Positions 4,414 through 7,152 of a stretch of DNA of 51,746 nt are shown piece after piece. The DNA is from Chara braunii (Eukaryota; Plantae; Charophyceae). Where the stretch lies: assembly GCA_003427395.1 (NCBI GenBank), contig BFEA01000005.1, positions 7,090,035-7,141,780 on the forward strand, given 5' to 3'. Each line of letters begins with the position of its first letter. The stretch's first letter is position 1. The notes under the pieces are model-generated. The model did not search any database, was not told where the DNA came from, and was given only the letters and a program-made list of their open reading frames with translations. A program made the position numbers and the translations under genes.

Positions 4414-4480
4414 TGGACACACAGCCAAAAGCTTTTTCGCCAGCGTCCACTAAACTGGCTCATCAGGGGGGAGATGCCCC
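4414..4480 (-). ncRNA. Hammerhead ribozyme-like core (degenerate)
   Basis: Minus strand: ggggcaucuccccc-CUGAUGA-GCCAG-uuuaguggacg-CUGGC-GAAA-aagcuuuuggcugugugucc. Conserved CUGAUGA/GAAA boxes and a perfect 5-bp stem II closed by G10.1-C11.1; stem III possible (AAAGCUUU palindrome or agc/gcu); stem I poorly paired. Confidence 0.45.
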
Positions 4481-4484
4481 TTGG

Positions 4485-5929
4485 TTATCGTTCCGAAATG
4501 GGAGAAGACAAAAGGACCAGGAGAGGAGAAAGAGGAAAGATAAGGAGAGGGGAGTAGGGAGGTGGGGGAGGGGAGGAGGGGGGTGGGTGGAGGGGCACAT
4601 GGACATGCGATCTGTTACCGTTGTCGCGCAGGAAGAAGATGCAGTCGACATGGCGGCCACAAAACAGAGGACGGGAGGGAGCTGCGGAACCTCGTGCGTT
4701 ACGACCCACACACTCGAAGGCAACCAAACCCCAGAATCATCAGTGCTCTGATTCACGGAACTGAATGCGGCAGCGTGGAGCTGAATGCGTATAGCTCAAC
4801 CAAAGCCCATGATGGTTCAGCTCAGCTATCCGCATTCGACTACAGTCGTCGAAGAAAGAGGGTCTGGTCATACACAGAGAACGAATAAATACCGTCCTGG
4901 ACTGTCCATCTGGCCCAGGACGAAATTTCAAGGGGGTACCAGTAGGAGTTCCGGCCAGGAGCCGGTGGGAACCCACTGTACCTGGGGAGGGGTAGAGAAA
5001 AAAAGTAGTCCGACGGCATACTAAGGAATATAATTGGAAGGCCATAATCTGCGCTTCTAGGTCCATACGTCGTGTTTTAAAGGTGACGTAGTGTTTTTGA
5101 AACAAACCGGATGATCTCAGAGCGACCAGCGGCAGAGCGCTAACTGGCGCCAAGGACCAGCACGGCGTGGCCCAACCGCACTCCTTGGCCTCCGGCAGCT
5201 ATGGCAGATCGGCATCCTCGAGGGTGCCCTCTGTCAATGCTATCTGGAGTTCTAGCCTGCGTGCCAGTGGTTCCGCTGACGTGACGTGTGCAAGGCGGAG
5301 GTACGTGGGCGGATAGCACGTCGGTGCACATACGATTGTGGCGAAGGGCGGGGGCGGACAAATAACATAGGGAGGTATTTGCTCGTCGATAACACCTGGG
5401 TGTAGTCTGCGATGGAGGATTTGTTCTACGAGAAGGACGCATGACTTTCCATCTTGGAGTCATGTTGGTGTCACCTGCAGGACCAGGTGGATCTCCTTTC
5501 GTCGACTGCCACTTGCTGGCCACGGGTCGATCAGGGGGCAACCTCGTTGGCTGGGTGGTTGGAGGCCGTGATGGAGCGGATGCTGAAAATCATGTGGGAG
5601 CTTGAGGAGGGATCAGCCTCTCTAACGGAAGGCGATATCGGATGCAGGCAGGCAGACCTTCTGACAGGGCACTGTTATGCCCTTTTTGAGGAGGGCACTG
5701 AATTGTGTGATGAGCTTCGGGCGCGACTTGCGGAGGGGTCAGATGGGCCGACGGCAGGGTGTGATCACTCGATTGATGAGATGGCTCGAGACACTATGGT
5801 CGTTGCTCATCAGGGAGATGGCGAAGGCCGGCAGACTCACCTGCTCTCATTGGATGCGCGGCTTTCTTCGTGTGGTCTGGCTGCTTTGTCAGCAATACCG
5901 ACAAAAATGGTGACGACAAAAACAACGAT

Positions 5930-5962
<33 letters not shown>

Positions 5963-6343
5963 TACGATGAAGACATCAACAACGGAGGCGGCATCAACTA
6001 TGCTAAGCATGCTGGCCGTGGGGGTAGCTGCTGGGAAGGTGAGTGTTGGGGGTGCGTTGCTGCGGCCCTCTTTGGTGGATGGAGTCGGGGTGTCTCCTCT
6101 TGTTGGTAACAATTTCTGGTCTTGTCCTGTCGCCCCTTCTCCATTGGCTGGTGATAGAACTCGGACTTTTTTCAGCGAAGGGGACGGGGAGGTGAGAGTG
6201 TGTTGGTTCGTGATGACCGTGTGTCGATGGGTATGGGGTTGGTGGGACGAGAGGGTGTTGGGAGCGAGGCTATCATTAGTCAAGGTCGAGTTTCTGTGGA
6301 GGCGGCGACGGAGTGCCTGGGATGTCTTTTGATCATTCGTCAC
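4485..6343 (-). pseudogene. Decayed long ORF of unknown function, antisense to the poly(A) tail at 7117-7152
   Basis: One minus frame (that of ORFs 4740-5153 and 4485-4727) translates from ~5880 to 4485 with few stops, mostly TAG/TGA (e.g. ...KEIHLVLQVTPT*LQDGKSCVLLVEQILHRRLHPGVIDEQIPPY...ARRLELQIALTEG...MDLEAQIMAFQLYSLVCRR...); a low-complexity N-terminus 5837-6343 lies in another frame. Confidence 0.5.
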
Positions 6344-6749
6344 TTAAATGCCTTGCGCCTACGGTTATAGGTGAGGACTGTTGGCGGAGGAATATGCTTG
6401 TAACTTGGTGCTGACCTGGAATCTCCTCCAGCGCGTTGCCTTTGGTGGTGTGTGACGTGGTGCTGACCTGGAATCTCCTCCTGCGGCCTACTGTAATACG
6501 ATCCAAAACAAAAATAAAGATAAAAACAATTACAATTTGAGAGAAAGCAGACTGCTAATTCACTTGCCATTGGTACCGCTCCCGCTCCATTGGGGAGTGT
6601 GGGGGGGCTATGGAGAGCCTGATCAGTGCCGGGTATTGGATCAGGTATTGGATCATGTCCACTAGGGTTTGTGGTGTGTATGCCTCCGTGGCATCTGTGC
6701 TCTCTACCCTAGGGTCTGCTCTCTCTTTTCAGTGAAGAAGCGGACGCAT

Positions 6750-6955
6750 AGGTCAATCCTTTCCTTCGGGGAAGTAATCAATGCCTCTCGCCTCCCCTTA
6801 CGAATATAACTAGAATTGGGAATCCATGTTTTGTAGAAGTTGGGTTCTCCGGAATNGCTTNATGAAGATTCAGGTGCAGAGGTCAATCCTTCCCTTNGGG
6901 GGAAGTAATCAATGCCTCTCGCCTNCCCCNGGGAATATAATAGAATAGGGAATCT
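6750..6955. repeat. ~75-bp tandem duplication
   Basis: aggtcaatcctt..ccttcggggaagtaatcaatgcctctcgcct...gaatataa.tagaat.gggaatc at ~6750-6825 and ~6880-6955; the second copy contains single Ns. Confidence 0.7.
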
Positions 6956-6996
6956 GTTTCACTCAACAAACATTGTATCACAAAGATGTATTCAAT

Positions 6997-7152
6997 GGGA
7001 CGCTGGACCCGATTTCCAGCAGGTGCTGCTCCCCACCAATAGATGGAGCCTCCCCGACGGTGCTAGATGTTTCTGCTCTTATCAGCACACCTAGCATCCG
7101 ATTGGGTTGTTCTCTTAAAAAAGAAAAAAAGAAAAAAAAGAAAAAAAAAAAA
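6997..7152 (+). mobile_element. Retroelement 3' structured tail, copy A, plus poly(A)
   Basis: gggacgctggacccgatttccagcaggtgctgctccccaccaatagatggagc, then hairpin ggtgctag...tgct-cttatc-agca...ctagcatc, then A-rich tail 7117-7152. Confidence 0.85.

Follow-up and report, generated by a model that had tools for sequence, protein, structure and literature searches.

A probable Chara braunii-specific family of protein-coding, LINE-tailed retroposons and an incomplete hammerhead-like motif beside one copy

Organization of the locus

We analysed a 51,746-nt stretch of Chara braunii DNA (the window), which contains on its plus strand, at positions 5134–7152, a ~2.0-kb poly(A)-tailed, single-ORF copy of a non-autonomous retroposon (unit A), whose ends are defined by paralogous loci. 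On its left lie a high-copy dispersed repeat (4205–4441), an incomplete hammerhead-like motif on the minus strand (4429–4482) that adjoins this repeat, a low-complexity tract (4490–4606) and a separate low-copy unit that is not part of the retroposon (unit B, 4607–5133). On its right lie two 3′ fragments of a Chara hammerhead retroposon, arranged as an inverted pair within (TA)n and devoid of a ribozyme core (7202–7310, minus; 7347–7405, plus), and a 5′-truncated LINE fragment on the minus strand (7408–9490), with a zf-RVT-matching ORF (8306–9490), a 3′ UTR and a type-1 tail (7408–7581).

The boundaries of unit A follow from its other copies, each of which is embedded in unrelated flanks. Specifically, positions 5849–7843 of a second Chara locus (L002) align with positions 5134–7150 of the window at 94.5% identity, tail and poly(A) included, while positions 5777–7161 of a third (L001) align with 5164–6581 and then run into an assembly gap. 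In addition, the match of an 87%-identical DNA contig begins at 5186, and to the left of 5134 the weak similarity of the window to L002 is non-significant in local alignment. Since the paralogs begin at 5134–5164 with unrelated flanks, the hammerhead-like motif and the segment 4485–5133 lie outside unit A. DNA-contig depth gives an estimate of roughly 4–10 copies of the unit; read and contig alignment covered positions 3700–6856. Within 4654–6856, neither strand has oligo-dT RNA reads in the single raw-read run used, about 6% of which was read.

As a preliminary description of the locus had noted, there is no target-site duplication: at either complete copy the best flank matches, 5 and 7 nt, are at chance level, in a search for which the 5′ boundary is fixed only to about ±10 nt. 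The absence of such a duplication is unusual for an endonuclease-driven LINE insertion. Two copies are located immediately behind the poly(A) of another element.

The neighbouring sequences are of diverse origin. Unit B has a depth of about 25, corresponding to 1–2 copies, and is missing beside the L001 and L002 copies; its one paralog, 84% identical, spans 4607–5109 only and sits in a 1575-nt DNA contig that is unlike the window on both sides of the match and has no adjacent tailed unit. The low-complexity tract, a member of family D3, is G/AG-rich (C-rich on the minus strand), and reads and contigs from other loci accumulate there. The high-copy repeat reaches a depth of 2,600–5,600 versus ~12 for single-copy sequence, or about 200–450 copies as estimated from contig depth, and a translated-ORF search for more copies of 4205–4490 returned zero matches. 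The hammerhead-retroposon fragments at 7202–7405 are 92–95% identical to L001 1539–1648, just downstream of a type III hammerhead scoring 45.8 bits, and are independent of unit A.

The sense reading frame and its protein

Unit A carries a sense ORF that starts with the ATG at 5412 and stops at 6330–6332. The window copy is slightly decayed, with a premature TGA at 5442–5444 where the paralogs read TGG, and premature stops also occur in L002. Even so interrupted, the frame provides the longest ORF within 4414–7152, at 5454–6332 on the plus strand (292 aa). Its protein is 91% identical to the C. braunii protein CBR_g40457 and 87% identical to CBR_g41777. An (ACA)n microsatellite at 5915–5975 on the plus strand, encoding poly-Thr inside the ORF, varies in length between copies through indels of 9 and 12 nt.

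Alignment of family members reveals an N-terminal domain of ~115 aa, encoded at about 5412–5790 on the plus strand, in which W49 and C88 are invariant. The AF2 model of the domain consists of three long helices, with a pLDDT of 76. The domain family comprises at least 42 related clusters (E ≤ 1e-3), and all 22 members checked are from C. braunii. There is no Pfam domain in the ORF: sequence searches of Pfam and PDB with the protein gave zero matches, a protein atlas search likewise gave no function, and Foldseek searches of PDB and the protein atlas with the predicted structure retrieved generic helical bundles only.

Coding constraint acts on the sense frame. Members that share just ~30% identity still have open frames of 257–439 codons, two independent subfamily pairs give pN/pS values of 0.46 (p = 0.0009) and 0.45 (p = 0.0016), and substitutions are ordered third > first > second by codon position. 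For the spliced gene model CBR_g29369, the retroposon exon alone, located by six-frame search, was used. Among the three closest copies (window, L001 and L002), dN/dS is 0.66–0.95 and changes are even across codon positions, indicating that these copies are decaying neutrally.

The preliminary description had instead placed the gene on the antisense strand, as one long decayed ORF running from 6343 to 4485. The relatives of the sense frame and its pN/pS of about 0.45 contradict this assignment, and the minus-strand ORF itself resolves into four tiled pieces in different frames that cross unrelated units: 5837–6343 (168 aa), 5140–5541 (133 aa), 4740–5153 (137 aa) and 4463–4756 (97 aa). No credible Pfam match was obtained for any of the four, and the 137-aa piece, the sole one searched for relatives, has none. 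The apparent minus-strand ORF consists of shadow frames opposite the sense gene, together with frames in two unrelated adjoining stretches.

LINE-type tails

The 3′ end of unit A is formed by a type-1 LINE tail of ~120 nt with conserved hairpins (6997–7115, plus), directly followed by an interrupted poly(A) (7116–7152, plus). A structured tail with poly(A) had been proposed here from the outset, and the proposal holds: the tail recurs as separate copies, its fold has a z of −2.3, and 7 of the 23 pairs of its 3′ hairpin are preserved through compensatory changes on both sides. Four further type-1 copies lie in the window, at 7408–7545 (minus), 12131–12228 (minus), 19647–19845 (plus) and 39300–39444 (plus), and 190 kb of Chara DNA contains 27 tail matches.

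The same tail is found on LINEs. Type-1 tails lie ~620–760 nt downstream of LINE-ORF matches at 8306–9490 (minus) and 38067–38681 (plus) of the window and at 10997–11251 (plus) of L001; two of these three loci have zf-RVT matches, whose scores of 23.1 and 19.3 bits are below the Pfam cut-off. The partner LINE is known here from 5′-truncated fragments alone, and no reverse transcriptase domain was found upstream of the zf-RVT ORFs of the window.

Of 11 ORF copies, 9 are followed by a tail on the same strand, 200–1400 nt downstream, and one of the two others is cut by an assembly gap. Family members bear either of two different tail modules, type-1 or type-2. Upstream of its type-1 tail, the window copy has two tandem modules (6733–6831 and 6863–6959, plus) that resemble, at ~69%, the type-2 tail found in other members; single N bases are scattered at 6857–6931, within this module region.

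The hammerhead-like motif

Hammerhead ribozymes occur in retrozymes and Penelope-like elements, and the preliminary description had read a CUGAUGA–stem II–GAAA series at 4466–4435 of the minus strand as such a ribozyme. The sequence is exactly as described: both core boxes are perfect, stem I is a GGGG/CCCC hairpin, and stem II pairs GCCAG with CUGGC around an 11-nt loop. The hammerhead, in contrast, is incomplete. The motif consists of stem I, CUGAUGA, stem II and GAAA, and scores 20.2 bits against the Rfam type III model Hammerhead_3 (RF00008), versus a gathering threshold of 48.5. The match leaves out model positions 3–8, which hold the GUC cut site and one side of stem III (its 5′ strand), and the pairs assigned to stem III are non-standard. 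A search of alternative registers yields stem III options of just 4 bp, with irregular "stem I" inserts of 43–68 nt. Minimum-free-energy folding places the 3′ half of the motif in a competing, more stable hairpin, and of 100 shuffled versions of the window, 22 contain the bare core pattern at least once.

The motif lies ~650 bp outside unit A, between the high-copy repeat and the C-rich tract. It represents a chance match or else a dead relic, and has no role in unit A. We considered that it might be a 5′-cut copy of the (TA)n hammerhead retroposon known from Chara, and rejected this origin: its similarity to the L001 copy consists of TA repeats only, and the neighbouring repeat does not stop at the TA stretch but extends across it.

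A broader version, in which the motif is the relic of a hammerhead retroelement from an unsampled family or of a Chlamys-type Penelope-like element, copied from cleaved RNA and landed by the C-rich tract independently of unit A, is quite possible, though short of probable. A type III hammerhead retroposon is present in C. braunii (the 45.8-bit example in L001), one subclade of C. braunii Chlamys elements bears hammerheads, and Chlamys elements prefer (CA)n and (C)n targets (PMC8557442). The motif adjoins both a C-rich tract and a high-copy repeat, it starts precisely at stem I, as expected for a copied self-cleaved RNA, and, for Hammerhead_3 alone, its match corresponds, after rescaling, to about E = 0.003 per window. 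The same rescaling, however, predicts about 90 chance matches of such a score per 1.75-Gb genome. Furthermore, beyond TA repeats the motif and its flanks show no homology to the hammerhead of L001, the single genuine family at hand, and searches of the window and of 138 kb from other Chara loci revealed no second copy. For the adjoining repeat, both listed contig pieces stop short of the motif, at 4380 and 4424, and depth declines about four-fold in the bin containing most of the motif; the greater stability of the competing hairpin also counts against a relic.

Discussion

Unit A is very probably a slightly decayed member of a family of non-autonomous poly(A) retroposons, ~2 kb long and specific to C. 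braunii, that have a sense ORF and share their tail with LINEs. Each element comprises a short 5′ UTR, one sense ORF, and a 3′ UTR with the structured ~120-nt tail and poly(A), and the ORF product begins with the conserved three-helix domain and continues into a variable low-complexity part. In the most probable mechanism, transcription would yield an mRNA of the element; a partner LINE, bearing the tail common to the element and L1-like LINEs, would supply the reverse transcriptase that recognises the 3′ hairpin tail and poly(A) and copies the RNA into new sites; and the protein of the element, maintained by selection, presumably aids its own RNA in competing for the LINE machinery. The analysis demonstrates the boundaries of the element, its recurrence together with the tail, the coding constraint on the sense frame, the occurrence of the tail on LINE fragments and the incompleteness of the motif, whereas mobilisation by the LINE enzyme and any function of the protein are inferred.

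The closest known counterpart is HAL1 (half-L1) of mammals, a group of non-autonomous L1 derivatives that retain ORF1 only. Like HAL1, the Chara element is about 2 kb long, has one sense ORF and no reverse transcriptase, ends in a LINE-type 3′ end with poly(A), and is presumably copied by a partner LINE. Unlike HAL1, its ORF is a candidate gene of its own, and the family has two different tail modules. That unit A is a true HAL1-type element, an internally deleted LINE that retains the LINE's own ORF1, is nevertheless a reading to which the joint presence of one ORF and a LINE tail within about 2 kb would lend itself, as would the loose resemblance of the long N-terminal helical bundle to the coiled coil of some ORF1 proteins. 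We consider it unlikely: the sole LINE 5′ region available (L006 3–2393, minus, its tail lying off the locus) encodes a CX2CX4HX4C zinc knuckle and has no match to the three-helix domain profile, and in 190 kb of DNA no match to that profile lies next to a LINE-like ORF.

Some SINEs also carry the 3′ tail of a partner LINE, a feature associated with stringent 3′-end recognition. Unit A resembles them in having a structured 3′ tail as in co-resident LINEs, with compensatory hairpin changes, followed by poly(A). It differs from them in that it has no tRNA, 7SL or 5S head (0 ARAGORN genes; 0 Rfam matches at gathering score), in its length of 2 kb, in internal T runs, at which RNA polymerase III would terminate, and in that it is protein-coding and under purifying selection (pN/pS about 0.45). 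With retrozymes and hammerhead-bearing Penelope-like elements the window shares the core-like motif at 4429–4482 (minus) and, separately, the ribozyme-less fragments at 7202–7405. In contrast to those elements, the motif has neither stem III nor a cut site (20.2 versus 45.8 bits), and neither it nor the fragments belong to unit A.

Alternatively, unit A might be a processed retrocopy from an ordinary family of host genes and not a transposable element, consistent with its sense ORF, poly(A) and hypothetical-protein annotation. Such an origin is highly improbable: the diverged members number in the dozens, every one has a LINE-type tail module of its own before the poly(A), their 5′ ends are discrete, and no intron-bearing parent gene was seen; moreover, members lie inside or beside unrelated genes, to which annotation has fused them.

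The preliminary description had joined the tail, the antisense ORF and the hammerhead into one bidirectional retroelement that makes its antisense 3′ end by self-cleavage, and this model is scarcely credible: the three parts are adjacent in the window, ORFs are tiled on the minus strand, and a CUGAUGA…GAAA core with stems I and II exists, but the minus-strand pieces are out of frame with one another and lack credible Pfam matches or, for the one searched, relatives, and constraint acts on the sense frame. The parts also do not recur together, an outcome that the preliminary description had itself named as refuting its model: the tailed copies in L001 and L002 begin at 5134–5164 without 4485–5133 and without the motif, and the paralog of 4607–5109 occurs apart from any tailed unit. 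A ribozyme-made transcript end is likewise at odds with a motif that has no cut site or stem III and lies ~650 bp outside the unit, and with the lack of RNA reads over the body (one run, about 6% read). Given the sense gene, the unlinked parts, the missing cut site and the absent reads, there is no bidirectional retroelement with a ribozyme-made 3′ end here. What survives of the proposal is a putatively LINE-mobilised unit with a gene of its own: the gene is probably not a LINE gene, the tailed unit recurs at L002, and most family copies are tailed, the gene being sense and not antisense.

For the protein we offer a speculative and rather doubtful role: it may be an accessory factor of Chara-specific, protein-coding LINE parasites that works on the mRNA encoding it and thereby captures the reverse transcriptase of the partner LINE, in a lineage whose changes of partner would come about through the exchange or stacking of tail modules. 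The occurrence of type-1 or type-2 tails among members, and the stacking of type-2-like modules before the type-1 tail in the window copy, bear on such switching.

These results remove a false lead, that of a two-way retroelement with a ribozyme-finished antisense gene. They point to diversified non-autonomous retroposons in C. braunii that are neither simply stripped-down LINEs nor SINEs, in a family that keeps its own gene under purifying selection and uses at least two LINE-type tails. The family accounts for dozens of Chara "hypothetical protein" models, including chimeras that fuse the ORF to unrelated genes, and provides a test case for the evolution of LINE parasites and for partner change.

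A discrete unit in a mosaic of repeats

The window consists of densely packed, mosaic-like repeats, among which a ~2.0-kb unit spans positions 5134–7152 on the plus strand, as comparison with two paralogous loci shows decisively. Window 5134–7150 matches the Chara braunii locus L002 with 94.5% identity, running through the tail into L002's own poly(A), while the match to a second locus, L001, extends from window 5164 up to an assembly gap; the flanks of the window copy are unrelated to those of the L001 and L002 copies on both sides. Contigs of public DNA runs, compared with the window at 80% likeness, agree with these boundaries and give rough estimates of a few copies for 5078–6667 (one begins matching at 5186) and one or two copies for 4654–5077. 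DNA contigs and paralogous loci set 4607–5133 apart as a separate low-copy unit; the single paralog of 4607–5109 is 84% identical and lies inside a 1575-nt contig otherwise unlike the window. Beyond it are a low-complexity tract (4490–4606) and a high-copy repeat (4230–4441; summed contig depth 2,600–5,600, versus ~12 for single-copy contigs). The preliminary description had joined a plus-strand L1-type tail, an antisense ORF and a hammerhead (4414–7152) into one retroelement; the paralogous loci and contigs reveal independent neighbouring insertions, an outcome that the description itself had named as refuting it.

Positions 3700–4230 are pieced together from short repeats of very high copy number, whose summed contig depth is 10^4 or more. 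The boundaries between them are sharp, at 3841, 3901–3903, 3995 and 4066, and some of the repeats are present in RNA reads. Elsewhere, two family members follow copies of one other repeat that ends in poly(A), the first directly downstream of that end (L001 5750–5776) and the second ~80 nt beyond it (L003 7778–7794), hinting at insertion beside A-rich tracts.

The unit ends in a LINE-type tail

The plus-strand tail is real: it occupies 6997–7115 and is followed by an interrupted poly(A) to 7152. This tail, termed type-1, recurs in the window at 7408–7545 (−), 12131–12228 (−), 19647–19845 (+) and 39300–39444 (+), with 27 matches across the 190 kb of Chara DNA examined. Its predicted fold is more stable than that of shuffled sequences (z = −2.3), and in an alignment of ten copies 7 of the 23 pairs of the 3′ hairpin are preserved via two-sided changes. 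A single LINE-like ORF is matched at three places, each with this tail ~620–760 nt downstream: window 8306–9490 (−), window 38067–38681 (+) and L001 10997–11251 (+); both window ORFs give weak zf-RVT matches, and the former resembles zf-RVT clusters in a protein atlas. Because it recurs, folds with preserved hairpin pairs and adjoins LINE-like ORF matches, 'L1-type structured tail' is a fair label. The 38067–38681 match is a second, diverged LINE fragment (32% amino-acid identity to 8306–9490), with a weak zf-RVT match nearby and a tail, 39300–39444, of the same type and at the same distance.

A six-frame profile search of all Chara DNA examined detected eleven copies of the gene carried by the unit, nine of which have a same-strand tail 200–1400 nt downstream of the ORF: type-1 in six, and in three a second kind, type-2, that also ends in poly(A). 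Of the remaining two copies, an assembly gap truncates one, and the other has no detectable tail. The association of gene and tail is far beyond chance, because type-1 tails occur only about once per 7 kb on either strand. In the window copy, two tandem modules ~69% like the type-2 tail (6733–6831 and 6863–6959) precede the type-1 tail, suggesting tail stacking or exchange.

The gene lies on the sense strand

The sense ORF runs from an ATG at 5412 to a stop at 6330–6332 (+). The window's longest ORF is 91% and 87% identical to the Chara braunii proteins CBR_g40457 and CBR_g41777, respectively (loci from assembly GCA_003427395.1), which confirms the source genome as Chara braunii. The window copy has a TGA at 5442–5444 where its paralogs have TGG, and the L002 copy carries a different premature stop. 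An exhaustive HMMER search with an intact paralog returned 42 clusters at E ≤ 1e-3, and all 22 members whose source was checked are Chara braunii hypothetical proteins. Members share an N-terminal domain of ~115 aa with invariant W49 and C88, modelled by AlphaFold as three long helices (pLDDT 76); neither Pfam nor the PDB sequences match it, and its fold neighbours are generic helical bundles only.

Members at only ~30% identity keep open frames of 257–439 codons, two independent subfamily pairs give pN/pS values of 0.46 (Fisher p = 0.0009) and 0.45 (p = 0.0016), and substitutions by codon position rank third > first > second. The youngest three copies (window, L001 and L002) have dN/dS near 1 on both strands, as expected of post-insertion decay. 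Some Chara gene models, namely CBR_g29369 (L006:4001–39769) and those of the proteins P0027, P0030 and P0035, are probably chimeras created by annotation: they join the ORF to domains unrelated to it (glycosyltransferase, DUF2232, RT/RNase H and RWD), and one such fusion extends over 35 kb.

Relatives and pN/pS thus place the gene opposite to the proposed antisense cargo. The supposed long minus-strand ORF (6343 to 4485) resolves into four tiled ORFs of 168, 133, 137 and 97 aa in differing frames. None has a credible Pfam match; relatives were sought for the 137-aa piece only, and there were none. Antisense ORFs of 130–226 codons recur at varying positions opposite other family members, and the minus-strand frames over 5140–6343 are best read as shadow frames of the sense gene.

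The hammerhead-like motif is incomplete and lies outside the unit

At 4429–4482 (−), the hammerhead core was correctly recognised, comprising the CUGAUGA and GAAA boxes, a 5-bp stem II and a stem I hairpin of 4 bp; the stem III 5′ strand and GUC cleavage triplet are missing, their positions being deleted in the Rfam alignment. The motif scores 20.2 bits against Hammerhead_3 (gathering score 48.5), a direct search of alternative registers found only a 4-bp U-rich stem III needing irregular 43–68-nt 'stem I' inserts, and in the minimum-free-energy fold its 3′ half pairs in a competing hairpin. It sits at the edge of a further repeat, for which the contig pieces listed stop at 4380 and 4424. L001 1484–1539 (+), by contrast, is a genuine type III hammerhead of Chara with all three stems and 45.8 bits, and it has nothing in common with the window motif beyond the core.

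The motif, which adjoins a C-rich tract, is less likely than not to be the relic of a hammerhead family outside those sampled, but this reading keeps a fair probability against that of a chance match. According to Craig et al. 2021 (PMC8557442), one Chara Chlamys subclade carries hammerheads, and Chlamys elements are biased toward (CA)n and (C)n targets. A bidirectional element finished by a ribozyme is not supported, since the motif lies ~650 bp outside the tailed unit, the gene is sense and no complete hammerhead is present.

The L001 hammerhead, near-intact and just under the cut-off, belongs to a short element extending to about 1640 and ending in (TA)n. Directly upstream are two U6 snRNA copies in inverted orientation, 1058–1158 (−) and 1175–1279 (+), with 90.3 and 79.1 bits; the second may be a retrocopy, because its 5′ stem is degenerate. 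Window 7202–7405 holds two inverted, ribozyme-less 3′ fragments of this hammerhead retroposon around (TA)n, forming a long hairpin that yields many spurious microRNA-like Rfam matches.

A protein-coding retroposon that probably depends on a LINE tail

The retroposon works in the manner of HAL1-type or tail-sharing non-autonomous LINE parasites. In the strict sense it is at most a candidate HAL1: the one LINE 5′ region compared carries a CX2CX4HX4C knuckle and does not match the retroposon's domain. That region, L006:3–2393 (−), forms the 5′ portion of a large LINE gene model (1874 aa, with RVT_1 and zf-RVT further on); it bears the knuckle in its N-terminal region and has no Pfam match. The retroposon is neither a retrozyme nor a Penelope-like element, a SINE identity was rejected as it has no polymerase III head, and a search of a library of papers turned up no description of the family.

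Two results count against the textbook picture of such an element: neither complete copy has a target-site duplication, and the single raw-read run that was sampled puts no oligo-dT RNA reads on 4654–6856. In a presumed-RNA run, two short contigs match the domain-coding part at about 86–90% identity, which would fit, weakly, transcription of other members.

What stands of the preliminary description is the tail and the motif core; the single minus-strand ORF, the complete hammerhead and the linked unit do not. In their place is a discrete, dispersed, poly(A)-ended unit of ~2 kb, lacking reverse transcriptase, with a structured 3′ tail common with LINE fragments and a selected sense gene. Partnerships between LINEs and SINEs are well established. 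By analogy, the reverse transcriptase of a partner LINE would recognise the tail and then use the element's mRNA as the template for copies at new sites; the element's own protein may aid the copying in some way. The element is a protein-coding, LINE-tail-dependent retroposon.
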